DNA of 64,000 bases from assembly GCF_032062105.1 (NCBI RefSeq), contig NW_026918226.1, positions 62,001 through 126,000 on the forward strand, read 5' to 3'. The notes beneath the pieces are model-generated. The model did no database searches. It saw only the letters and a program-made list of their open reading frames with translations, and was not told where the DNA came from. The translations under genes and the position numbers were made by a program. Below, piece after piece: positions 1,937-37,900 of the stretch. Within the stretch, counting starts at the first letter, position 1. Each line of letters begins with the position of its first letter. This stretch comes from Saccostrea cucullata (lineage: Eukaryota).

Positions 1937-4462
1937 CTTCCAGATTGCCTTATTCGTTCATATTCACCTGTAAATAAAAATTCAAATGAAAAGTTTTAGT
2001 TACGGTTGGACCAAAACTTGCTGATTTCAAATGAGTAAAAAATGAAGAAAAAGCACAAATTCCACACCTCTGTCGAAATCACTGAAACCGATATAAAACC
2101 CTTGACTGTGGGGTTCCGGGTCAAGACCCGACCGGACCGGAAACACATTACGCCACTGGGTCAGCATCCCCAGATCATGTATACACAAAACACTTCTACT
2201 TAATGCTTTACACTGCTGGTTTCTACCATAGAATCAGTGCAACACACTTGTATAGAAACGTCTTGGACCATAGCCATAGAGAAACAAAGGATTCTCTCAG
2301 TGGTTGTAAAGGGTGTTAGTCTGACGGGGTTGTGATAAGACAATGTGCTGAGTAGGGGCTGTGTGTTTTATAGACCGTGTCTGAGGAACTGTTTCATTAA
2401 TATTTCAATATCTAGAAATAAACTTTAATTGTTAGTCACAGCAGAAACAGAGTGCAGGTAGTAATACAATGTAACACAATGGGTGTGATTAAAAACTTTT
2501 GAGTGAAATGACACAGCAAGTCATCTGTGTGGTTATGACACAGAAAATGCAGCTTAATGAATATTAGAAAATCAAAAGACGGGGGGGGGGGGGTTAACGG
2601 ACTTTAATTATTTACTAGGATGATATATCCTGGTGAGAGAGAAAGGATATAGAGAAAAATCATTTTATTCTTTTCCAAAATCGTTTTTATTGTTCTTCGA
2701 AAGTGACACATTAATCTAGCTTTTTTATGAATCGCATTTTTGTTTACAAAAATGTTTCCCGTCTTTCGTTTTTAAGGTAGGGGGTGGGGGTGTTGAATTA
2801 AGCCTGGATTATGAGAATTGGCCAAACTTTCATAAGCCAGACAATCTACCAGACTTGTAATTTATTTGGCCCGGACACTACAATGCACACTTATAGAAGA
2901 TACTGGTATGTTTTTAACGGAGTAGCATGAATTATAAATTAGTCATAAAATGTTTTGGCAGTTGATTATAGCCTCATCGGAAAGAGGGTGGGGTGGGATG
3001 TGTTTTTATTGTTGATTAAGCTTCATAAAGTCGTGTATCTATAAAAAAATAATAAGTCAAGGACCCAAATGTATAAAGTTTACAGATGTATAGATGTATA
3101 GAGAGCTGAAAGAGTATATAAAGATTACCAATCACGCAATATATCACAGAAAACATGCTATGTATACATGTAGAAGGCACAATACAGAGAAATCTCCGAC
3201 ACCATAATACAATGTAACACCGTCACAAACCTTCCTCTTCCTCGTCAAAGGTTAACTGGGTGTTACGATTATCTAAAATTACGTCAAAGAAAAACTTCAA
3301 AGTAAAATGAAAAAAAATTCTCGAATGGGACGTTAAGCAATATACAGTCAATCAATCAAAATACATGCATATTGAATGAGTTTAGTAATATATTGATCGA
3401 ATATGGAATCATTTTCCTTTTCCCGTAATATATTGATCGAATATGGAATTGTTTGCCTTTTCCCGTATCCATCGTATACATTTGCATGTAGGAGTTTTAA
3501 GGAATTTTTAAATGATTGTGGATTCTGGGCAACGAAAATATAATGATACTCATGCACTAGTAATAGTATCGTAACAGTGGGATATAATCTTTGGCTAGTA
3601 TACGATTTAGCAGGCTTTTGACATACGATAGGGGTGGAACGACGTTTGTAAATTGATCCCTGTCACAAATCTTGAAGACTTTCAGTGTTCAACACCTCTC
3701 CACAAATCTATTGTCAAAACTGTTGTTTCACCTCAGTGCAAGTATCAAATGTTTATACCATAATAAAATATTTTTGCCTCGGTAATTTTAAATGCAGGAA
3801 ATCTGGTGTCAGTAGAAACTATTGTAAGCTTTCTAATATACAAAACCAACAAACGTCTGAAACCTTTGTTCAGCATTTGTTTTGTTTTATTCTTTTTTCC
3901 CCCAATTTTGACAATATATTATATTTTTTTATCACTCAAGAAACTTTGATGTTAAACCATATTTAACTGCAAGCACAAGTGCATTAAGGATTATAACGTT
4001 TGGCCGATTTGGGGGTCACAATACGATGTATAATACGAAGTATAATGTGTATGTGATATTATGCTTTTAAAGGATTATTGTATAGACTTATTAGAGGAAA
4101 GATTAAACGGTGCATTGCTTTGTTAAACTCGATTAAATGCCCATTTCAACCGTCTCATTTTTTTTATGTAAAACTAATTATTTTCAAGAATGCACGGTTA
4201 CATTTATCGCTCATTTTATTTTTCCAATTAAAATAAAAATTAATTCATAAGAAAATAAGTCTTGGCAAGCAACGAAATCGTATTGATTTTATCAGATCAG
4301 CTCAATATAAATGTAAACATTATGTAATCTAGGTATTTAAAAAAGATGTATACAAAAAACAATGTTCATTTTTAAAGCATTTCAAAAAACTTTGTATACT
4401 GAAGATAATTATCATTTAAATCTAAATGAACATTTACCTTTAACGCCAACATCGGCTGCCAT
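1937..4462 (-). CDS. Candidate first two small coding exons (4462-4438, 1967-1937) of a gene continuing leftward; product unknown (MAADVGVKGEYERIRQSG...)
   Basis: ATG at 4462 followed by strong donor AAG|GTAAAT; exon 1967-1937 flanked by TTTACAG acceptor and AAG|GTAAGA donor; phases compatible; promoter-like motifs (GTAGCAAC, CCACGTGACGTAA) at about 4575-4612. No homology recognised. Confidence 0.3.
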
Positions 4463-10545: not shown

Positions 10546-13500
10546 TTAAGAAGGATCAGAGAACTTGTAAAATAACTCGGTATTTTCAATTAGAGTCTTA
10601 GCCAGAGACAGTGGAGGAATATCCACGATTCCTGCCAAAAGTTCAACCACACAATGCAGTATAGTGGGCACAGAACTGCCATCTTCACCAAACATGTTCT
10701 GTAAACTCTCTGGATGCAAATATCGTAATTGTTTTTGTGAGAAATTGATTTGAAAGTCTTTCATGTTGTGCCATGCCTTTCTCTTTATTTCACCAATGAA
10801 GGAGTGAGGTGCATTGCTCTGTAGAATTATTTTTTCCACCGGGATGACTTTATTCTTTATAAGGGAGGCTACTCTAGAATTATGTTTCAAATTAGCACCT
10901 GAAATAAAAAATAGAAATTAATTTCATTTTATAAGCAATATGATGCAGTGAAAATCAAAAATACAAAAACATTTTAAGAATATACATGTGTACTGTATAC
11001 AAGGAATTTTTTTCCATTTCCTCCTTCTCACTGGTGGGCAAATACATGTATACATAAGATGGAATGAATTAAACAACAGCATTGTGACTGGTTGAATTTA
11101 AAATGGGGCAAAAAATGTGAAAGCATGAAAATAAGATGGGGCGAAAATAACTGTATACAGTATCTATATTGATTGTTAACTACCGTATTCCCTATATTAA
11201 TGTCCTTACCTTCAATCATAATAAAACAACCAAAATCTTTGACTAGAGTGGAAATGTCCTCTTCAGTGAATATGCCATTTTCATTAAGAGAAACACAGTA
11301 GGAGTATATCATAAGCCGGTAATAATGAAGGGCATCTAGGAAGTCTTTATGGATGCTCTGTTTAGGACCTACATGAAAACGTATTGGTATCTTTTGGTTG
11401 TAACAGAATGGAATCTGCAAGTAGATAGAATTATTTGTTAAATAGTACATGTATTGGGCTAAAACAATGTTACAGTGAAAGGAGATAATCAAGAGAGTGT
11501 TATTTTAAAGTCACAGTAAGCCAATATGACAACTAATTCATATAACCTCTCACTTCTATTCCCAAAAGTTTATTATATAAACCAGCCAGGGAATATCTTT
11601 CTGAAAATGTAGTTTACTCTCTATAAGTATAATAAGCCATGGTTTGAAATAATTGTTTTGACATTGTCATGTATCTTTAGATAGAATACAATATATTGGC
11701 AAACTTGGGGGGATGCCACCCCCCCCCTTTTCAGTTTCTGCATCCATTTATTCAGAGGAATTTCATTTTATACGTGTAATACTGGTATGTTTGATGAAAA
11801 TCTTAAAGTTCAGCATTAGAAAAGCAGGGCTTGTATTCATTATGCTGTTTGTATACTGCACTGAATTAAGATCTGCAACACTCACAATTTCTTTAAAGTC
11901 CTGCAGCTGTTTTTCTTGAGTAAGTTTGCTGGCACGATAACCCAGAGGAACATCTCCAACACAAGCAAAGGCTTTGTGACTCCGGATTTGTTTGACATAC
12001 CTCAAACAAGACCTCACGTCTGAATTGTTTTTCTGAAGATCCAGATCAAAACCTGCAAAAGAGGAAACAAATCATAAACGTTTACATTATATATATTATG
12101 TTTTCACCAGAAAATAAGAATGTGAATCAAAATGATTGAAATCTCTCTTAATTCATAACTGAAATGAACTTAAAAATGAAATGTCCGTATTTGAACTCAA
12201 AGGTTATAAAAACTTTTAAAAAGTATAAAATCTTTTCTTTATATAGTTCAGAATGACAATGTCTATTTTTTCTCATTACCTACATCCACATAGATAAAAT
12301 GTTTGTACTTGTTGTCTTTACAGAATGCCAGGGCAGCTTTAGACTCCTCCATGTCTACTGTGTCAGCCTTGACTACTAACCGCTGGATACCTAAAATTGA
12401 TGAAGTTCACAATTTAATAGAAGAGAAAGATGAAAGTTTGATTAAAAGTTTAATAAATTTGATATAGTTCAGTAATCTGTGATAGGTTATCATTAAGCTC
12501 GTTGATTTCTTTTTGATGCTAATTGCTTTCTTCAGGCTGCATGGTGATGAACAAAGCATCTAGAACTCTTGGGATGCTTATCAAATAGTTTTTGTCAATA
12601 GGGTTTGATATTTTGTGTCAAAGGGATAAACTAGCGTGTGACAAGATAATTTAATCCAAAGGGCTATCAAATTCTAAGCATCCTTAATATATATTAAATG
12701 GGTGTTTGAGCATTGGGCATTAAAAATTTGTACATGCATGCTTGTATAAAGGATAGGTTTTTGACAATATGAATCAATGTCAAATTAGACTGAATTACCT
12801 TTTGATGCAAGATTATGGACAAAAGTTTTATGCTTTTTCTTGAAATCTTTGAAGTCAAAGAAAAAACATCCACAGTCAATAACACTGTAACCAAACTGTG
12901 TTTTGATTTCCTTCAGCAGAGGACATGATGTAACTTGGTCAGCCTTTCCATGGATTCTCCAGCTTTTGATGCTTTTAAATTGTAACAATTGTCTGCTATT
13001 GACTTTCTGGATTGTCAAGTTATCAGCTAATGAAGAGGCTGTCCTACAACAGTAATGGATATAAATAGTTTTAAATAAGATGTTGGTATAAAAAAAGAAG
13101 CTATAGACATTAAGATATACAATGTATTTATCTCAATCTTTGCCAAGTACTGTAAGTCCTTTTAATTCTATGGTGTTAAAATTTAACGAGTTATTAAAAG
13201 GTACTAATCTCAATTGATTTACCAAATTTCATGCTGCAAGAACTTAATTTTAATTTTTTATATGCATTTGAACATTTTTAAAAACCAATGATAGAATTCA
13301 TGATGGGTGTAATTTCCCAGATAAGATAATTAAATAAAAATTCGCAAATATAGTGAAATTAAAACCATCATGATTATTTTTCCAATCTACAGAATATGTA
13401 GTAGCAAAGTATGGAGAGAAAAAGTTGTCACCCTGTCTTTTACTGCTTATGATGGTATAATGCACCCAACTTCACTAATTTTTTTCTGAATGCAAATACT

Positions 13501-17697: not shown

Positions 17698-19080
17698 TTA
17701 TATTGTCAGAATCCTGTCTCTGAAATAACTGATGACTCTGGCATTTAAATTATTGTCATTATAACATCCATAAAGCACATTTTGCATTTCTGGAAAACAG
17801 TATTTTGCCGCCTCAACAAGTCTTGGGTTTTCCTTTTCAAATAAATTATATTTGACGTGAATTTTTGTGAAGTGTGAATCCGGAAAAATTTTACCAAGAT
17901 TTTCATTTCCGAGGAAAAAATCTGGTAAACACTTCTTTTCTAATGATAAGTATACAAATGTCATAAAGTATCCCAATGCCTCACGGACACCTGCAATATG
18001 GAAGCCAGAAGGCACGATGACGGTAGGAATTGTCAGCAGAAGGACGCAGTACATGGCGATAGTTTTTAAATGATATGACGTCAGCAGAATGGCGGCTTGA
18101 TTCGATTGCTCCTTTAGCCTTTTTACCAAGGCTTTCATTATGCGACACGACGTCATGATATAACGCCGCTCTCTGTTCATAAAACAGATATCAAACATGA
18201 ATTTTTCATAGGCAGAAGAGCAATTTCGCCATCTTAATTCTTTGTCTTTTTCACAAATATCGGCGTTCTCTTTATTTATCCATTTCATGAGTCCGAATCT
18301 CGGAAAGTTAATTGCTATGTCACAGGGGGATGAAATAATTGCCCCAGGAATTAAAATCATTTCACTGCCCAACATAAGTGCTGGAACAAAATCGACATAA
18401 ACAGTACTAGGATCTTGAAAGTCAACATTGACTGTCAAATCCATTGTAGGAGGTCTGGATCCTCTTTTAACATGATAAACATGTACTTCGGATGGTCGTC
18501 CGGTTTCCGGTGTCCCTTCTAAACGTTTTGCAGTTGCAAGAAATAATTCATATAATGTTTTATCCATTAGAGATTTAAACACTTGCTCTTGAAGTGCCTT
18601 AGTGTTGAGGAAACATGCGCCATTAACCACTTCAAAAACTCCTTCCCTCTGCAGTCGTGGGAGCATACCGATTTGTTCATCATTCATGACCCGGAGACGT
18701 ATTTGTCCTGGTAGATATTGACCAGCCGTGTCCCACAAATGAACTTCCTGTAGACGAAGCCCTTCAATTTTAAAAGGAACGATGGCATCAAACTCGTCAG
18801 GAGATTCGATTTTCAATCCCTGCCTTGCACTTCCCTGTCGTATAAAATTTCGATCTATTGTCAAGCCTTCGAAATACTTTTCGGCCTGTTTTTGAAGTTC
18901 TGTGAGAATGATTCCTAGAACATCATCTGCGACGAAGCAAGCATTTTCCCAAGCATACTGAGTGAAGTCTATTGGAATGGAAATCTTCCCCAGAACTTGA
19001 GATTTCAAATAAACTTCATAGTCAGGAAATAAATCGTCTGGATAGCGCCATGTATTCGGGAACAGTCCTTCTGACGCCAT
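17698..19080 (-). CDS. Mab21/cGAS-like nucleotidyltransferase (cGLR-type; MiD51/ITPRIP-like C-terminal motif), paralogue 1, 460 aa
   Basis: Pol-beta NTase motif RQGS...PDEFD, third acidic residue in VDFVP, Mab21 helical-lobe motif SYHLKT, LPDFFLGN; single coding exon; 5'UTR acceptor at 19117. Confidence 0.9.
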   Translation of the reverse strand: MASEGLFPNTWRYPDDLFPDYEVYLKSQVLGKISIPIDFTQYAWENACFVADDVLGIILTELQKQAEKYFEGLTIDRNFIRQGSARQGLKIESPDEFDAIVPFKIEGLRLQEVHLWDTAGQYLPGQIRLRVMNDEQIGMLPRLQREGVFEVVNGACFLNTKALQEQVFKSLMDKTLYELFLATAKRLEGTPETGRPSEVHVYHVKRGSRPPTMDLTVNVDFQDPSTVYVDFVPALMLGSEMILIPGAIISSPCDIAINFPRFGLMKWINKENADICEKDKELRWRNCSSAYEKFMFDICFMNRERRYIMTSCRIMKALVKRLKEQSNQAAILLTSYHLKTIAMYCVLLLTIPTVIVPSGFHIAGVREALGYFMTFVYLSLEKKCLPDFFLGNENLGKIFPDSHFTKIHVKYNLFEKENPRLVEAAKYCFPEMQNVLYGCYNDNNLNARVISYFRDRILTI

Positions 19081-20411
19081 GATCGTATAGAAAATTATCC
19101 CATAAAGTAGCTGTACCTAGAAAAAAAATATGAAAGTAAAATTTTACGAACAATACATTTTCAGAAAACTTAAACGTACATTACATAAAACCGATTGATA
19201 ATATTCAAAGTAAATATCAATACGTCATGTGCACAGGGATCCAAATACTTATATACATGTATATCAAGGTTAAATTTTATCAAGGCTATGATTGTAAATA
19301 CACCTATAGTAAAGTAGACTGCATGCATTTTAAAAAAAAAAAGATCACAAAGCAGAGGGCCAATTAGCAAGATATATTTTTATGTCTATTTTTCGATGTC
19401 CAAAGATTATGTAGTGTCCTTTATTATTTTTGTCTTAGTCATACACATGTATATATACAGTATGCATAAAAATTCTTCTTGCTAACTTTACGTTAGATTA
19501 TAGTATCGCAATGATATTTTTGTAATGTTTATACATATCGTCTTACATCATGTACATAATACATTTCATTTTCTTCAAAAATCATTCTTATAGCTCTTTG
19601 GAGATAAAGACCAACACATACTGGTATTCATTTAATCTTTTATCTATTCATGCAAGTTTCAAACATTTATTGAAATTTTATGTTTTATCTATTTATTTAA
19701 TTTATTTTTCTCTCTCTCTGCAATGACAGTTTTATGATATGTACCACAAAATTTATTCACTAAACAACACACGGCAACGTTTATTGATACTTTATTTATT
19801 GATTTTTTTATGTAATTTCTGTATATATATGATATTTATCATATGTGATTAGTTTCAGAGGTGTATATTATTGTTTTTATACTAACTTAATCATTAATTA
19901 AAAAGCTTTGAAGGTAAAGTTTTCCCGAGATCTTTTTTTTAACTTTGATATTTTGTTCTACAATACTAAATCTCTCTTTATATGTCAGATGAAAGATATT
20001 CAACCACAAATTTTTTGCCCACATATTTTGAAATATGTTTTTTCCGACCCCTGTAATAACATTATGAAATCAGACATTCAATTTGATTTTTGTGTTGGGG
20101 TACTGTGAGCATGAACTCACTAAATGATACCCCCGCCTCCCACATGATTTTAATGATAAAGTCCATGTTTTGCACTGGGAAACTCTAAATAAGTGCAGGT
20201 TAAAAAGTAAACTAGAAGTTGCACAGTGGCATTATGTTATACAGAATCTGTAAAAGCATCATTAAATTTTATTCAGTGGTATGAGAAGAGTTGTAGATAA
20301 GAGATTGGTGCCCTTCAAGGTTATAGAAAAATGGCAGTGTCAATGTTTTGCTATGGGAAACCAAAAGATGTGTCCGATCAAAAAGTAAAATGGTTCTATC
20401 TATTTGGTATA

Positions 20412-20815
20412 AGAGGAGTTGCGGATAAGAGATGGGTATCCCAAAGAGTAACGGACGGGTGGACGGACGTACTGACAGACGGACAGACATCCCGATCACT
20501 ATATACCAAGCGTTCTATTGCAAACTTATGGGGTACTTTCTATCAAGGCAACATGCTTGAATTAATTAAGTGAGTTTTCATACGACAAAGTGAGGGGATA
20601 TACTAGTAATAAAAGAATTGGAAGCAAGTTCTTACAACTAACGATTTACATAGCATAGGAACTCATTAATTGTAGGAACTTGCATCCGATTCTTTTATTA
20701 TACCCCCTGCTTGAAAAGCGGGAGGGTATATAGAGATCGGGATGACCGTCTGTTCATCCGTCCGTCCGTCTGTTACGCTTCGGGGTACCCATCTCTTATC
20801 CGCAACTCCTCCTCT
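20412..20815. mobile_element. Two oppositely oriented 5' fragments of a HINE/DINE-1-like element
   Basis: 20412-20507 is the imperfect reverse complement of about 20725-20812 (GAGGAGTTGCGGATAAGAGATGGGTA, (GTCC)n microsatellite); TTATACCCCC start near 20699. Confidence 0.65.
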
Positions 20816-21585
20816 ACCTCGAAATGAAATTTACTCACTTTTTAAATCTATATTTCTATGAACTATTTCAATTGCATGACATAAACTGTATATATAATAT
20901 GTCATGCGATTGAAAAAGTACATAGAAATATAAATTTAAAGTGATAAAAGTGAAAATTCTATTAGTAACATAGCAACTTAAATTCTAAATGTTTCATCAT
21001 TAGATAAATTTGATCCTTGACCTCTTTAACCTCTTAATGAGACCTTGACCTTTATTCTATATAAAGGTTAATGGAGACTCATTAGTTGATTGTAGAATTT
21101 TGCTAAATTAATTATTATGTTTAAAATCGTTGACCTTAAAACATCTTCCCAAATTCCTCTAAAAAAGATTAAAACCATTTTCAATTTAAAGGAAATCTTA
21201 GGTCTAGAACAACTTTTTGATATTTCATCCATTGATTGGTCATTGATTTGTTTTTACTAAATCATAAAGTAATAAGTCAACAAAGTTATAAGTAAACTGA
21301 CTGCTGGAGGCTGCCATGTTGAGAGATAAAGTATCTTGCTTGCTAAATATTTCCCACAATCCTCACTTTTATGACGTCTTCGGTCGGGGTTTGAAATCAG
21401 AATAAAAGAACGTACGAGGTTTTTTTTAATTCTAAATTCCCGACTGATGCCTTTCAGTGACAGAAGAACGTACATTTTTTTTTTAAATTCTTAATTCCCG
21501 GCTGATGACTGTCAGTGACATAATTAGTATACTGGTTAAAATCTCCTCCTGTAATTCACCCTCTCGGCAAGTGATGATGCTACTC

Positions 21586-21646
21586 GGATCCCCACTGAGA
21601 ACAGCTGATAACAAGGAGCACCATCACTTGACGACTTGCAGAGCAA
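21586..21646 (+). repeat. Split direct repeat A1
   Basis: Exact match to 27876-27936. Confidence 0.95.
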
Positions 21647-21724
21647 CAGATAAGACGTGTATAGCCAGTGTTAAGAAGAAAAGACAAACAAGGATAGGTA
21701 ATATATTAATTCTAAATTTACAAA

Positions 21725-22128
21725 AGCCGTTGAGGGCTGTTGAAAATTTCCTGCCGCTGAGGGCAGAGGTTAATGCATAAAATTTTAAGCCGCTGAGGGC
21801 TAATAGATAAATTTACTGCCGCTGAGGGCAGAGTTTAAGCCGTTGAGGGCTGTTAAACATTTTCTGTCGCTGAGGACAGAAGTTAATGCATGAAATTTTA
21901 AGCCGCTGAGGGCTAACTATTTTACTGCCGCTGAGGGCAAAAGTTTAATGCATGGAATTTTAAGCCGCTGAGGGCTAAACATTTTACTGCCGCTGAGGGC
22001 AAAAGTTTAATGCATGGAATTTGAAGCCGCTGAGGGCTATTGAACATTTCCTGTCGCTGTTATTTTACTGCCACTGAGGGTAGATTTATTGATATCAAAT
22101 GCATGAACTTTTAAGCCGCTGAGGGCTT
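21725..22128 (+). repeat. Array of about 13 short hairpin motifs (AGCC/CTGCC-GCTGAG-GGCT/GGCAG) in the retrotransposon 5' leader
   Basis: The motif recurs every 20-45 bp, with two stem types alternating, separated by AT-rich linkers. Confidence 0.9.
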
Positions 22129-22555
22129 TAGATATTGTTGAATGAAATGTAGAAAGTTAAAAGCCACTTGGGCGTGTAAAACACATGAAAGTTTGATAAG
22201 CCGCGAAATGATGATGATAATCAAAATATAGAGTTTGTCTATAAGCTAATTAATGAGATATTAGGAGATACTAGTTTATGAAGATAAGCTGCTTGAAAAT
22301 TCAATGCCAGTGAAGGGCCCGGGCTGTCCACGACTATTGAATAAAATCTTTAATATACGAAAGTTATTAAGAATAGATATAAATATATAGTATATTGTTT
22401 ATATGAATTATGGCTCTTTAAGTAATGATGCGAGAGGCCGAATCATGATGATTATAAAGATTTATAGATATAACATGATCAGATGATATTAAGATCAACG
22501 TCTAGCATATTAAGTTAAATGTGGTAATCATTTTCATGTATTTTCTCATTACTAG

Positions 22556-23731
22556 ATGCCACCTCCGACTGTCTTAAAGCGGAGACACTCTCTGCGGGGG
22601 AAAGACTTGTTCCCCGTCATCAAAGAGCTGCGAGGACTAGAACAGCCGGTGAAGCAGTTCGCACGGTACAAAATTAACACGCCGCTTGAAGACATGGACA
22701 AAGAGGAAGTAATTAACGCCGTCAGGGAGTTGACAGGAGAGTCGGAGAAAGACTGCCTGCAGATGGCTGGTAGAGAGATGTCAGACGAGAATTTAAGGAC
22801 GCTTCTCCATCTAGTTATCTTAAGGGCGAATGAGTTCGGCCAACCAGCTGGCCAAGAATTAGCCGCCGAGAACAAGGTATACAGTTAGACTGTAATGATA
22901 ATTACTGTAATTATTACTAGCATCATAACTACGGGATGTCTTAATCAATATTCCTTATTCCATGAATTATACTTGTGTAGATAAAATTATTTAAAAAAGA
23001 AAAGAAAAAAAAAAAAAAAAATAAATAAATAAATAAATAAACGATTTTCATTTTGATTGATTTTCACAATTATTTGTGTACAGGAGAGTGAGCCGGAAGA
23101 GCCACCTGCCAAGAAAGGAAAGTCGGCACCGAGCGTTGAGAAGAGACTACAAGAACTTGAGAAAAGTCAGAAAAATGAAGAGGACAAAGAAATAGAGAAT
23201 GTGAAAGAAAAGGTGAGGAGTTTGGCACTTCAAAGCAGCCCTAGTATCCCTCTTCTCCTTGTTACTTTGGATGAGCTCGCCAGAATAACTAGGCGGAAGG
23301 GCCATGATGAGGCCTCCGTGTTTGATGAGCTCTCCCGACAGGCTAATTTAAATCAAGACAAAATTGATGTCCCAAACTTTTGTCTGAGTGTCCTTGGAGG
23401 CAAAGCGTCTGATATAGTAGGTAAAGCGCTGTCTAAAGCTATCAAATCAAAACCCGAAACGAAACCTTCGGAAACGGAGAAGACTCCAACTCAAACTCAA
23501 TCTCCACTATTGAATCTATATGGTCAACCAAACTACATGGGATATATTCCACCACACTACAATTTTGTACCTGGTTCGCACGGAGTGGGTTCTCAGTATG
23601 GGTACCGCCGATACCAGCGCGCTCCATATCGGCAACCGAGGACCGGCTGTCTATTCTGCGGGGCAAATGACCACTATGTCCGAGACTGTACGAAAATGAA
23701 GGCTGCGAGAGGGAAAATGAATTCTCAATGA
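22556..23731 (+). CDS. gag: Gag-like protein (about 322 aa), two exons 22556-22876 and 23084-23731, C-terminal CCHC zinc knuckle
   Basis: Phase-0 AAG|GTATAC donor and TGTACAG acceptor join the 110-aa and 224-aa ORFs in frame; CLFCGANDHYVRDC = CX2CX4HX4C. Confidence 0.8.
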
Positions 23732-24090
23732 CATCTGACAATTTTAAAGAACGGATTTAGTCAATTTTAATTAATTTCTCAGACTTGAAATGTACATTTA
23801 TTGGTAATCTCTTTAAGTAAAATATGATATTAATTATCACTTGTCAATGATTTGAATACATTACATGTAGTGTGTTTTCAGTCTGAAAGTAGAATTAATT
23901 AAATATAAAATGAAATGAGTGTTATTGGTATTTGTTATCCCAATACCTGATATCCGGGGACACTGAAGCCCTAGTGAGTACTCTCACGTGGATTGATGGT
24001 TTGGGATCATGTTTTTCCATGTTATCCTAGTAGATGATGCTCAAATCAGAGGTATAATTATTAGTAATAATAAATATCTCATGTTTGCAG

Positions 24091-25857
24091 GAATTTAACA
24101 TTTACGTTCCTGACTGGGAGAAAAGTGACGAATTTAACCCAGAGGAAATTATTTTACGTAAGAGAGAGCATCCTACTTGGACGACATTGGGAGAATGCGG
24201 TTCCAAGCCAACAATCCATGCAGATGGACAAGTATTTATGGATTCTTACAGCGATTTACTGCATTTGTCTGTAAGAAATCCTGATCGATTCATTTCGGGT
24301 GAAATTCACAAACACAAAGATGAATGGTTGCGTATAACTCAAAGAAACTCGGACAAAATGTCAACTACAATTCAAAATTGGGTCAATAATGGCATTGATG
24401 TTAGGTCCTTCCTGCGTCCGTTCAAGGGAAACTTCAAGGGGCAATCATATGATAATAGACTCCCACCAAAACAGTATTTTCAAAATTCTAAAACTTGCAG
24501 AAACTTTGTTCATTTTATTAGAGAAGAAATAAGTGAGAGACTAGTGAATGGTTCATTGAGACTATGGGGAAGGGTGGGAACAAGCTGTCTCCCTCAGATT
24601 ATCATGCCTTTGACAGTGGAGCCAAATAAGCCACGACTCTGTCATGACGAGCGCTTTTTGAACTTGTGGACTAAGGATTTACCCTTCACATTAGATACAC
24701 TTAAAGACGTTCATAGACTTGTTGGGGAACATGCTTACATGATGTGTTGCGATGAAAAATCCGGATACGATCATATTAAACTCACCAGAGAATCAGAAAC
24801 GTACTTTGGAATTCAGTTTGGGGGATGGGTCTACACATACACAACCCTACCATTTGGTTGGAAAGCCTCTCCCTACATATATCAAATGATTGGGATGCAA
24901 ATCACATCATATCTTCGAGAGAAAGGTATTCATATGGTTCAGTACATTGATGACAGGCTTGCAGTGTGTCAGCAATATGTTCAATCAGAAATTCAAGAAC
25001 AAGCTTGTCCGTTACAAATGGTGAAACTTATTGTGACCGAATTAACAGCCTTAGGATATACACTAGCTATCAAAAAGTGCCAGCTTATCCCAACTACAGT
25101 AGTCCGATACTTAGGTTTTTTAGTTGACTCTACTAAACAGGCCTACTTACTTCCATTGGATAAAAAGGAATCATTCATCAGAATACGAGAGAGTATCTTG
25201 CAAACAAATGAAGTTGATGTTAAAACACTTCAACGATTCGCCGGGAAATGTATATCAATGGCAATCGTTATACCAGGTGCCAAATTATACACAAGGGAAA
25301 TGAATTTCGCGATATCACTGTGCATGAAGAATAGTAAACAAACAATCATTTCTCGTGAGCTGCGACAAGAGATCGAACACTGGAGGTTTTTGGACGACTG
25401 GGAAGGCTTCGCGCCTTGGAGACAAGAGAAACATCTTCAAATGTCACTGTCAACGGATGCATCCTCTTTCCGCTATGGAATCTCCCTTATGTCAGGCCAA
25501 GACAAGGGTCTATCTTTTGGAGACTATTGGTCAAGCGAGGATGATAGACCGATTCATCTTAAGGAAGCATCAGCTGTCGACATTGCCCTCAAGTCCTTAG
25601 CGATGAAAATCAAAGACCACAGATTAGACATCCATGTTGACAATACCGCAGTCTTGCATGCTTGGGAAAATCAAAGGTCACGGGACCGGCATTTGGCTGA
25701 TATAATGAAAAATATATTCCAGACAGTTTGGAAATTGAATATTGACTTGAGATTACACTATGTGCCGTCAACAGAAAATACTGCAGACGCTCCATCTAGA
25801 ACTATTTCTTACACAGATGTAATGCATGCTAAATCCCCAAACATGGCAGAGGGTTGA
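24091..25857 (+). CDS. pol: Reverse transcriptase-RNase H of the DIRS-type element
   Basis: DEKSGYDH, LPFGWKASP, YIDD, YLGF; RNase H motifs TDAS, HLKE, VDN, YVPS..N.ADAPSR; no ATG at the ORF start but a TTTGCAG acceptor at 24090. Confidence 0.95.
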   Translation, partial: EFNIYVPDWEKSDEFNPEEIILRKREHPTWTTLGECGSKPTIHADGQVFMDSYSDLLHLSVRNPDRFISGEIHKHKDEWLRITQRNSDKMSTTIQNWVNNGIDVRSFLRPFKGNFKGQSYDNRLPPKQYFQNSKTCRNFVHFIREEISERLVNGSLRLWGRVGTSCLPQIIMPLTVEPNKPRLCHDERFLNLWTKDLPFTLDTLKDVHRLVGEHAYMMCCDEKSGYDHIKLTRESETYFGIQFGGWVYTYTTLPFGWKASPYIYQMIGMQITSYLREKGIHMVQYIDDRLAVCQQYVQSEIQEQACPLQMVKLIVTELTALGYTLAIKKCQLIPTTVVRYLGFLVDSTKQAYLLPLDKKESFIRIRESILQTNEVDVKTLQRFAGKCISMAIVIPGAKLYTREMNFAISLCMKNSKQTIISRELRQEIEHWRFLDDWEGFAPWRQEKHLQMSLSTDASSFRYGISLMSGQDKGLSFGDYWSSEDDRPIHLKEASAVDIALKSLAMKIKDHRLDIHVDNTAVLHAWENQRSRDRHLADIMKNIFQTVWKLNIDLRLHYVPSTENTADAPSRTISYTDVMHAKSPNMAEG

Positions 25858-34932: not shown

Positions 34933-37900
34933 GCTTTTATAATTTTAAATCATGTCTTCATTTAAATTTTTACATAAGGAAGGTAAAGTTTATATTGACG
35001 ATAGAAATTGAACGCTAACATTTCATTTAAGGGTACTTAACACAAACAAAAAATGGATGCACGGACTGATATATATTTTTTGACTGATTTTGATTTGAAA
35101 TGACATAAATAATAAATCCCTGAAATATAAAGAAATCGTAGGTTTTCCTTGGTGCTAAGATTTGAGACTTTGTTTTGCTTCCTATATAATCCCATACAAA
35201 ATTTTGCAGAAATTTCGAATTTTATGACAAAATCTTATAAATTTCACCCATTTTACTCGGTAAACATCATTCAGGTTGTCAATTTAAATGTAAGTCTATG
35301 AGAAATATTCCTGATTTCTGTAAAAAGTTTGTTTGTGTTATTTATCCTTAAGGACACCTACCCACTATTATACTGGCCAATGAACACAATATCAGGGATA
35401 CAATGATAAGGAATCCAGTGAGCCATTGGTATGATAAAGAATAGAAACGGTCCAAACCTTGCCTGAAAAGATGCAGGTAAACTGTCTTATCAAAATACTT
35501 AATCCACTTTTTTAAATAATGAATACCATTTCAACTATTTGTTTTTTCAGTTACTATTTTCAAGATATCATTAGAATTTATGGGAAAGAAAATTAACCTA
35601 AAAGGACATATTCTGCTCTTTTAAAGTTTATTACGTTATACGTTATTTGCATTAATCACCAAAAAGCTTTGTGAAAATCCCACATAGATTGTGCTCCAAC
35701 CCTTAAATATTATGATACATATGTATTCTATTCCTTATATGAAAAGGTTTTAAAACATAACGTACGGTTTTTGTTGAATCGATGCTGTGAGAAAATCAGT
35801 TGTTGTTTCTGTGGTGTAATAATCTGTCCAAGAAGTGTTCTGCATCATGGTTGTACTCATAACCGTCATATTTGACAGTGACGTCATATCGTAACATTTG
35901 TCTGTTGGTCCTGGTGGCAGTCCCGGAGTACGTTTAAGGGTTGTGGAGAAGTTTTGTCCATTAGTAATCCACAATCCGATAACTGCAGTAAGCAGTGTTC
36001 CTATGATAGCTCCCTGAAATATTTTCGTCAATTTATTGATTTGCCTGTAGGCTAAATACAAGCCCTTCACCATCCGATTGATATTTTCTCTTATATAGAC
36101 CAAATTGTGAATGAAGTTTGAAGTTGAATTTTGAAAGCGTTCCGAGATTTATTTTTAATTTTGCAGACGTCAGCTACAAACCTTTGCATTTCCCCAAGTA
36201 CAAAACACGGAGAAAAGGAATAGTCCAGATGCAGGACCACCAAAGGCAGCAAGAACGCTGAATGTTATCTGTGGAAAATTTTATCAGTCAGAAAAAAGCA
36301 AAAACTATGAAGATATTAATGAGCTGTATCATAACAACAGAATTGTTTTATATATCATGTACCTGCGACATTGGTCCTTTAATCTTTGCTATAAGAAAGG
36401 ACACCCCGACGCAGAGAGCACCAATAACCACAACTATGAAAATATGTCGTCAGAGTTTAATAAACATATTGTTTGATTTGTTAATTCTATTCTGTTCTAT
36501 TTTGTTACATAAAGTGAAAACTTTACCANNNNNNNNNNNNNNNNNNNNNNNNNNNNNNNNNNNNNNNNNNNNNNNNNNNNNNNNNNNNNNNNNNNNNNNN
36601 NNNNNNNNNNNNNNNNNNNNNNNNNNNNNNNNNNNNNNNNNNNNNNNNNNNNNNNNNNNNNNNNNNNNNNNTGTCACCGATCTTTCTGACAAGGACTTAA
36701 ACTTTGGTTTGACGACATCTTCAATGGCTAAAGCTGAGAGACTACTCAACCCCGAGGAAAGTGTACTGAAAGAAGATTTAATTGTCAAACACCATACTAG
36801 AGCTATACTTTACATGTAGCTAAAAGTATGAACTGGACAAAATAATAAATATTTAACCTCAATGATGCGCTGAAAAGGGAGGCCATGAACAGCCCAGCCA
36901 TTCCTGGAGCATCTTTGAAAATCTCTAAAACCATGAATGGCACAACCTGAAATTGTATTTACCATTTCTGAATGACAAAAACTTAAAGATTACGTTCAAA
37001 TTACTGTCTATTTGCATCGTTGCAATGATCTACATCAAAGCTGCTTTAATTTTTTTCGTCCCAATTTTACCTGATTTGGGTTGGAAATTCTTTTGGACTT
37101 GAGAGGATCACAACCAAGGGAGGAAAAGTACGCATAAGCCACGGCTCCCTCTAGAGTGGCCAAAGTGAGGGTAATGAAGAAAGCAGGTCCAGCTAAAAAG
37201 AGCACTCTACGAAAGAGAACCATGGTGTAAACAGCTATTTTTGAACAAAGTATTAAAAATGTACAGACGCGATATGCATCTCGAAGTTTTCTGAGAAAAG
37301 AATTTTACCGAGATGAAGATATATATTCTGCTGCATTTAAAATTGGAAAATGTTTCAAAAAGATAAGTTTAGTACTACATCTTACTGTGATGTTAAATAT
37401 AATATAGACAATAAAAGACAAATGATTTAGATCTACCCACCTATTAGCAGCTTTCTCGGTGGGCGTGGATACAATTCTTTGTACCGAGGTTTGTCCGATG
37501 TTGAGACTCGCCATACGAAGACAACTGCCAATAACAAGGCTCCAAAACGTATGTCGGACTGTAGGATCCGGGTCAAAACTGGAAATAATCAAATATAAAT
37601 TTTCTGTCTTTCATTGCGCTTGCCTGGTATATTTTACAATCATTCTAAAAAACAATGTACCAATAATCAAATATTGTACGTTACATTTTACATGCAGTCA
37701 CTGAAAGTCTGTTTCTTTTCATACATAAAGATTTCCTAATTCATGTAACATTGAAAAAGGACATAAAACTACTGTAAAAAATCATAAAATGAAATATTTA
37801 CTTGAACATATCTAATCTTCCTGTATTTTTGTTAATCTCGATTACATTTGATACGCCACCGGCAACCATTGTGCCCTTCAAAAGAAATTGGACATTAATC

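Follow-up and report, generated by a model that had tools for sequence, protein, structure and literature searches.

The packaging signal psi of retroviruses is located 3' of the major splice donor, and the zinc knuckles of the retroviral nucleocapsid (NC) favour exposed G residues and purine loops. Reiterated hairpins are also known from RNA viruses, such as the stem-loops with G-rich loops in the nsP1 region of alphaviruses and the dispersed hairpins of RNA phages and small plant viruses that are bound by coat protein. Little is known about how tyrosine-recombinase retrotransposons select their genomic RNA and copy it, and a cis-acting RNA signal has not been described for them in the searchable literature. 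The idea of dispersed packaging signals is discussed in PMC6475782, and a purine loop in the RNA of mouse mammary tumour virus is reported to be needed for Gag-dependent encapsidation (PMC8096270). Among the tyrosine-recombinase elements of the DIRS order, split direct repeats are the architecture of the Pat1-like/Ngaro-like branch (PMC4157794). Here we describe an array of small hairpins in the predicted leader intron of a DIRS-like element with such repeats from Saccostrea cucullata. The element lies in a window of 64,000 nucleotides (contig NW_026918226.1 of assembly GCF_032062105.1, positions 62,001 to 126,000 of the forward strand); by window we mean this whole stretch, and positions are those of the window unless a related locus (L001, L002, etc.) is named.

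The array consists of 13 hairpins on the + strand, each with a stem of 4-8 bp that closes a loop of the GCUGAG type (Table 1), which agrees in number and bounds with an initial annotation of this DNA. It runs from an AGCC arm at 21725 to a closing arm that ends at 22128. The 12-base core, made up of a GCC arm, the six-base loop and a GGC arm, was used as the 12-mer GCCGCTGAGGGC in a search of the 64-kb window that allowed up to two mismatches. This gave 13 matches, all on the + strand and all within 21726-22126, with no match outside the array; for the same search shuffled sequences gave 0.34 matches as expectation and 2 as maximum. Stem types AGCC/GGCU and (C)UGCC/GGCA(G) alternate along the array, and the loop varies to GUUGAG in two units and to ACUGAG in one. 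Both units that the annotation had singled out are found where it had placed them, namely the one at 21863, where the arm TCTGTC pairs with GACAGA in a doubly changed stem, and the one at 22068, where a G-U pair keeps CTGCC opposite GGTAG under the ACUGAG loop. The individual units fold singly as predicted, with energies of -6 to -9.8 kcal/mol, and Tandem Repeats Finder (TRF) reports a higher-order unit of 62 nt with 3.3 copies at 21834-22039. A search of 20500-29000 against Rfam at E ≤ 1 returned three weak, chance-level matches, none of them within the array; judged by this search, the array belongs to no described RNA family.

The AT-rich linkers had been described as variable, which holds for one linker class. 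The linker that leads from a CUGCC-type hairpin to the next AGCC-type hairpin is conserved, in five copies and in Saccostrea echinata, and contains the palindrome AUGCAU. This palindrome starts at 21773, 21886, 21948, 22010 and 22099 in the window, is found in five copies between 3417 and 3755 in the S. echinata locus L001 and occurs once inside the array of the more distant locus L053 (2237); local folding of the window places the palindrome within a weak loop. AUGCAU in the conserved linker could serve as a dimerisation-type contact. Six-base palindromes are not enriched overall in the leaders, and the hairpin loops themselves are not palindromic.

As expected under the initial annotation, the array is also present in other copies of the element. 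L006, another S. cucullata copy that lies among different genes, is 98.3% identical over 21586-25770 and likewise has 13 units, and the copy from S. echinata, L001, has a body that is 86% identical and approximately 17 units. The units of the three copies were combined into an alignment of 30 units, 23 of them distinct. None of the 23 distinct units has an unpaired position in the four inner pairs (100% paired), although the pairs themselves vary: A-U in 13 and U-A in 10 units; G-C in 22 and G-U in 1; C-G in 18, U-A in 3 and U-G in 2; C-G in 22 and U-G in 1. The U-G intermediates of the change from C-G to U-A occur in S. echinata. The columns of the loop are 90-100% conserved across the same units. 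The covariation score is 0.328 as compared to 0.161 in shuffles, a value attained by none of 500 shuffles, and the tested six-pair helix has 79% of its cells paired, versus 28-54% for controls in which the helix was slid. Moreover, all 13 occurrences of the loop motif in the window leader are closed by at least 4 bp, as compared to none of seven elsewhere in 20000-30000, and in L001 the corresponding numbers are 18 of 21 in the leader and 0 of 18 elsewhere. The comparison supports selection for pairing in the stems: pairing persists where both sides of an inner pair have changed or a G-U pair has arisen, and the loop remains the same, which bears out the selection on structure that had been suggested. 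We are highly confident that the array is a selected RNA structure. A constant loop on stems that covary is typical of RNA hairpins that bind a protein.

A search with the reverse transcriptase (RT) yielded 709 relatives at E ≤ 1e-20, with LOC133172302 of S. echinata as best match (91% identity). Distant families, with RT identities of 40-53%, lack the GCUGAG array. Their leader introns do begin with clusters of short hairpins in which one loop is carried by different stems, and each family has its own loop (Table 1). In L002 the loop motif is closed by at least 4 bp in five of six cases in the intron, each time on a different stem, and in none of 45 cases elsewhere in the locus; for L008 these numbers are 5/6 versus 0/19 and for L003 4/5 versus 0/32. 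When the 11 hairpins of L002 and L008 were aligned on their loops, 96.4% of the cells were paired, as compared to 54.8% in shuffles, with both-sided changes at all five pairs. As an unbiased statistic we took the number of different arms by which one and the same loop is closed: this count amounts to 3-5 in five of seven leaders and never exceeds 2 in 618 control windows. The survey covered 51 loci with enough upstream sequence and used antisense strands, coding regions and dinucleotide shuffles as controls. Positives were obtained for 22 of the 51 upstream sense sequences (loci that are not all independent, rough grouping of the positives giving an estimate of about 14 distinct families, and of which one, L002, is a false hit outside the element), for 5 antisense sequences, for 1 coding control and for 28 of 510 shuffles (5.5%). 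The bias to the sense strand points to G-U pairs and thus to RNA rather than to double-stranded DNA. Many metagenome-derived relatives have such units in long tandem arrays 5' of gag, some of which fold no better than expected by chance.

Some apparent parallels were discarded. The CATATG array of L002 lies upstream of the RT, approximately 1.4 kb outside the A1 repeat of that locus; it comprises tandem, hairpin-like CATATGA-TTC-TCATATG units (3759-4250) and probably belongs to another mobile element. A scan for the doubled 12-mer of the array identified more than 120 contigs in bacterial and archaeal genomes and 7 in IMG/VR. The two that were inspected, L125 and L209, are unrelated, and we consider the matches coincidental: L125 has a 21-nt tandem repeat (1291-1386) that is probably coding, and L209 two spaced copies of the 12-mer (1108-1152) in coding-looking sequence. 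Recurrence of a family's loop motif in its own terminal repeat, which concerns an 8-mer in the window and a 5-mer in L009, is at chance level by eye and by a rough estimate.

The array lies inside the predicted first intron, as had been proposed, between a conserved donor-like site (21697/21698) and an acceptor (22555/22556, ...TACTAG/ATG) directly before the gag ATG, and it starts 27 nt 3' of the donor-like site. The first 140 nt, which include the donor, show 97% mean column identity between the window, L006 and L001. An AG is found directly before the gag ATG in the window as well as in L001-L004, L006, L008, L009, L028 and L053, and in L002, L003, L004, L008 and L009 a pyrimidine-rich tract plus AG is located directly 5' of the gag ATG. 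Donors of the form AG/GTAwAT are found 85-112 nt after the start of A1 in the loci where A1 was located (window, L002 and L003) and at the equivalent position in L008 and L009; the donor of L053 reads GTG/GTAAGT. This leader layout, a donor-like site followed by an intron up to the gag ATG, is common to at least six related families, and in five families the hairpin cluster starts 20-32 nt 3' of the donor. Since the leader exon has no ATG in seven of eight loci and the introns hold 2-31 ATGs, only spliced RNA would offer the gag AUG first. With a predicted donor on its 5' side and the gag AUG on its 3' side, the array takes the leader position expected of a psi-type signal. In the searchable literature we found no description of leader introns or leader hairpins of DIRS-like elements, although an older account in a subscription journal is possible.

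The gag exons, which were compared one by one rather than as a joined model, are 99% identical to the S. cucullata NCBI model LOC134236043. The Arg-rich segment that had been pointed out in Gag is located at its C-terminus, where a CX2CX4HX4C knuckle follows, and one CCHC knuckle with a basic stretch is found at the Gag C-terminus in every family examined. The predicted protein thereby has the zinc finger that marks the Gag of Pat1-like elements. The loops of the families hold an exposed G or purine runs, which is the type that retroviral NC knuckles favour. In addition, one S. cucullata assembly contains both L006 and L002, which carry different loops, and for this reason we favour an element-encoded, co-evolving partner over a shared host factor.

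We propose that tandem amplification gave rise to the array, a cluster of small hairpins with the six-base loop GCUGAG in the 5' leader, and that this cluster would be carried on the full-length unspliced RNA and be missing from the spliced gag mRNA. The loops would form repeated binding sites for an element-encoded protein, most likely the end of Gag that combines a basic region and the CCHC knuckle, and many weak sites might jointly mark the unspliced RNA as genomic RNA for packaging and copying. Binding near the donor could also restrain splicing. As the most likely function we tentatively put forward a multivalent Gag-recognition signal on unspliced genomic RNA, perhaps with this additional effect on splicing, and we place it a little short of an even chance. 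The psi-like reading of the initial annotation stands as regards selection for pairing, conservation, position and the C-terminal end of Gag; from these we infer splicing of the leader, the protein that would bind and a role in packaging. A wider and on balance doubtful proposal is a family-specific 'loop code', in which hairpins in a retained leader intron beside the donor are read by the Gag of each family.

Several points weigh against the proposed Gag-recognition signal. The thermodynamic z-scores of the whole array are modest and do not distinguish the strands (-2.9 for the + strand and -3.2 for the - strand). Within the Saccostrea family only about 5-6 of the stem changes are independent events, and one of these disrupts the outermost pair, giving C-A in two units. 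Splicing of the leader is predicted from sequence: the donor of the window agrees with the consensus at six of nine positions and is tied with other GT sites. In L028 the array (308-565) precedes the best donor-like site (601), so that it may be exonic and occur on spliced and unspliced RNA alike; the earlier claim that the array is present only on unspliced RNA thus agrees with the predicted intron position in the window and may not hold for all families. L057/58, L035, L053 and L059 do not fold better locally than shuffles, and in distant families some arrays may not consist of true hairpins, because a stem of 4 bp is expected by chance in many 30-nt units. The Gag knuckle matches Pfam zf-CCHC with E = 0.04, which is below threshold, the AlphaFold2 model of Gag has a mean predicted local distance difference test (pLDDT) score of 61.5, and a Foldseek comparison of this model with PDB gave nothing below E = 2 and no capsid match. 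A sequence search of PDB gave weak similarity to NC knuckles only (E = 0.3-0.7), and the name Gag is based on position, the knuckle and the DIRS literature. Binding by Gag and a part in packaging are a candidate role of the hairpins.

Among other explanations, the most probable one takes the hairpins as real RNA structures that work without Gag, either through a host factor or through an effect in cis on RNA processing: they might govern splicing of the leader (intron retention), promote the export of unspliced RNA as a constitutive transport element does, or prevent scanning and translation of the unspliced RNA. A cluster that starts 20-32 nt after the donor and an intron with 28 upstream ATGs would suit such a role, and multicopy structured export elements are known in retroviruses. 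A shared host factor should however keep one motif, whereas the loops differ among families and even within one assembly, and we therefore consider this explanation rather unlikely. The hairpins could also be bound by another protein of the element. One candidate is RT, which might use the hairpins to recognise its template or to prime synthesis. The other is the tyrosine recombinase, which has the DNA-binding ALOG domain and for which the array would supply repeated accessory sites, either on double-stranded DNA or on single-stranded cDNA in folded form. Short inverted arms that flank a 6-nt spacer do resemble recombinase core sites, the circle junction is itself a 9-8-9 inverted repeat, and the junction arm of L003 matches a unit of the window in 11 of 12 bases; amplification via linear single-stranded cDNA, as reported for DIRS-1 (PMC7192593), would fit as well. 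This is nevertheless improbable: the arms count only 4-5 bp, they include G-U pairs on the sense strand, 22 sense as opposed to 5 antisense positives favour + strand RNA, likeness to a junction arm is not seen in L002, L003, L008 and L009, and an 8-mer in common with the terminus of the element in the window is expected by chance.

It is still less probable that the array acts at the level of DNA, where it would serve in the 5' untranslated region as an enhancer, an insulator or a set of transcription-factor sites, like the Su(Hw) sites of Drosophila gypsy. A GC-rich 12-mer that is repeated in one orientation in AT-rich spacers just 3' of the 5' terminal repeat would suit such a role. Pairing survives, however, through two-sided compensatory changes and G-U intermediates that alter the DNA motif, relatives hold their loop on unrelated stems, and the signal is biased to the sense strand. 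We give least weight to a neutral minisatellite, in which slippage would have amplified a unit with a chance inverted repeat and the covariation would consist of a few inherited changes. The 62-nt TRF unit, copy numbers of 13 and approximately 17 in the two species, the small number of independent events and the frequency of 4-bp stems by chance can all be read in this way. Yet none of the inner-stem cells in the 23 distinct units is unpaired, the loop stays constant although one class of linkers varies, clusters of the same design that are not tandem occur in L002, L003, L008 and L009, and the survey found an approximately eight-fold excess over shuffles; the units do not drift without positional constraint, which makes this explanation highly improbable.

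Table 1. Features of the DIRS-like element in the window and loops shared by the leader hairpins of related loci.
Feature	Locus	Position	Strand	Basis or remark
DIRS-like tyrosine-recombinase retrotransposon with split direct repeats	window	21586..28175	+	Pfam RVT_1, ALOG, Phage_integrase; repeat layout
Terminal repeat A1	window	21586..21646	+	100% identical to A2, 27876-27936
Predicted leader exon, 112 nt, no ATG, ends GGATAG/GTAATA	window	21586..21697	+	conservation; donor position of relatives
Predicted leader intron, 858 nt, GT..AG, 28 ATGs	window	21698..22555	+	AG/ATG conserved in relatives
Array of 13 hairpins with GCUGAG-type loop	window	21725..22128	+	12-mer search, unit alignment, folding
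Truncated 14th unit	window	22050-22059	+	5' arm and part of loop only
Predicted gag exon 1, 107 codons	window	22556..22876	+	99% identical to residues 1-107 of NCBI model P0121
Predicted gag intron, phase 0, GT..AG, A-rich tract inside	window	22877..23083	+	exon join of P0121 exactly here
Predicted gag exon 2, including stop codon	window	23084..23731	+	99% identical to residues 108-322 of P0121
Arg-rich stretch, then single CX2CX4HX4C knuckle, Gag C-terminus	window	23603..23689	+	knuckle at 23648-23689
Reverse transcriptase/RNase H frame	window	24085..25857	+	Pfam RVT_1, E = 1.4e-18
Frame overlapping the end of the reverse transcriptase/RNase H frame	window	25826..26281	+	no family match; position like that of the DIRS methyltransferase
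Tyrosine recombinase with ALOG-type N-terminal domain	window	26316..27530	+	ALOG_dom, E = 9.5e-14; Phage_integrase, E = 2.7e-6
Internal repeats B1 (27802-27876) and A2 (27876-27936), circle-junction template	window	27802..27936	+	
Terminal repeat B2 (28075-28149) and short inverted copy of A start (28149-28175)	window	28075..28175	+	
Shared hairpin loop UGAUU/UGAUG	L002, L008			
Shared hairpin loop UUGGU/UAGGU	L003			
Shared hairpin loop AAGAG	L009			
Shared hairpin loop UGGGU	L053			

The host element measures 6.6 kb and has the repeat layout A1 ... B1A2 ... B2 plus a short inverted copy of the start of A. Both repeat pairs, A1 and A2 as well as B1 and B2, are 100% identical, and the internal repeats are located downstream of the recombinase frame. 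The same A1-B1A2-B2 layout is found in L002, L003, L028, L053 and L059. An RT domain is predicted together with a tyrosine recombinase in place of an integrase, by which the element is assigned to the DIRS order. The frame of 151 aa that overlaps the RT end, in which a methyltransferase-like domain was sought in order to separate Pat1-like from Ngaro elements, has no Pfam match even at E ≤ 1. No primer-binding site was noticed in the element, in the course of an analysis that included no search aimed at one, and exact look-ups of the open reading frames (ORFs) of the window and of P0130 returned no record. The sequence of the window has a G+C content of approximately 31%.

At the B1/A2 junction an inverted repeat surrounds an 8-nt spacer, with the form 9-8-9 in the window (27861-27886) and a perfect 10-8-10 in L002 (~11180-11215), an architecture that matches a tyrosine-recombinase core site. 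By virtue of this inverted repeat the 5' and 3' ends of the RNA would be complementary. The junction arm of L003 (3357-3372, - strand) agrees with the window unit 21866-21877 in 11 of 12 bases, with a post hoc chance of about 0.02, and the window's own junction arm is less similar to the array unit. An acceptor-like ...TTTGCAG/ is located at 24090, before the RT frame, with a short stretch just upstream (24036-24090) that contains an ATG and a GT. The element lies between two tandem paralogs of a Mab-21/cGAS-like nucleotidyltransferase on the - strand (17698-19080 and 30588-31922, approximately 12.8 kb apart), whose ORFs comprise 460 and 444 aa and share a block of 183 nt that is 73% identical. 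A 58-nt tandem duplication (21406-21520) adjoins the 5' end of the element on its upstream side. Further upstream, at 20406-20940, three inverted-repeat pairs with chance-level Rfam microRNA matches may be remnants of small mobile elements, and a run of N is found at 36529-36671, distant from the element.

A cluster of covarying hairpins beside a conserved leader donor provides a concrete candidate for a cis signal in tyrosine-recombinase retrotransposons. It suggests that the retrovirus-like arrangement of a spliced mRNA next to an intron-tagged unspliced genomic RNA arose or persisted outside elements with long terminal repeats (LTRs). A leader intron that ends at the gag ATG would also be a new landmark for the annotation of DIRS-like elements. 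If the doubtful loop code were true, the choice between splicing and packaging would be tied to self-recognition, co-resident families would avoid packaging each other's RNA, and the Saccostrea array would be an amplified version of high avidity.

Comparison with described systems shows both likeness and difference. The resemblance to the boxB hairpins of phage lambda, which had been remarked upon initially, is formal only: both are short hairpins that can be reiterated and the candidate partner has an Arg-rich peptide, as the N peptide has, but the loop of boxB has five bases and is GNRA-like, whereas here it is the six-base GCUGAG, Rfam gave no match and there is no homology. The Su(Hw) array of gypsy likewise consists of about a dozen 12-bp motifs in AT-rich spacers 3' of the 5' terminal repeat. 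There a host zinc-finger protein binds the motif as double-stranded DNA, and the motif is not an inverted repeat, whereas here the stems covary and have G-U pairs on the sense strand. With the Pat1-like/Ngaro-like DIRS elements (PMC4157794) the host element has in common RT, a downstream tyrosine recombinase, the A1-B1A2-B2 layout and a zinc-finger Gag; the published DIRS descriptions that were searched make no mention of leader introns that end at the gag ATG or of hairpin clusters in the leader. As in the reiterated stem-loops of RNA viruses, the array offers several short hairpins with a conserved loop and variable stems, and avidity would come from multivalency. The viral stem-loops are located in coding regions and are bound by capsid proteins without zinc knuckles, in contrast to the non-coding leader intron considered here. 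Retroviral psi lies, like the array, between the leader donor and the gag AUG and has small hairpins with exposed, G- or purine-rich loops; a Gag with a basic region and a CCHC knuckle, and confinement of the signal to unspliced RNA, would be further points in common with the host element. It differs in its few distinct hairpins, as opposed to 13 near-identical tandem ones, and the host element has a tyrosine recombinase and no LTRs, with no palindromic dimerisation loop in its hairpins. In its proposed function the array is most similar to retroviral psi and to the packaging signals of those RNA viruses that use repeated stem-loops.
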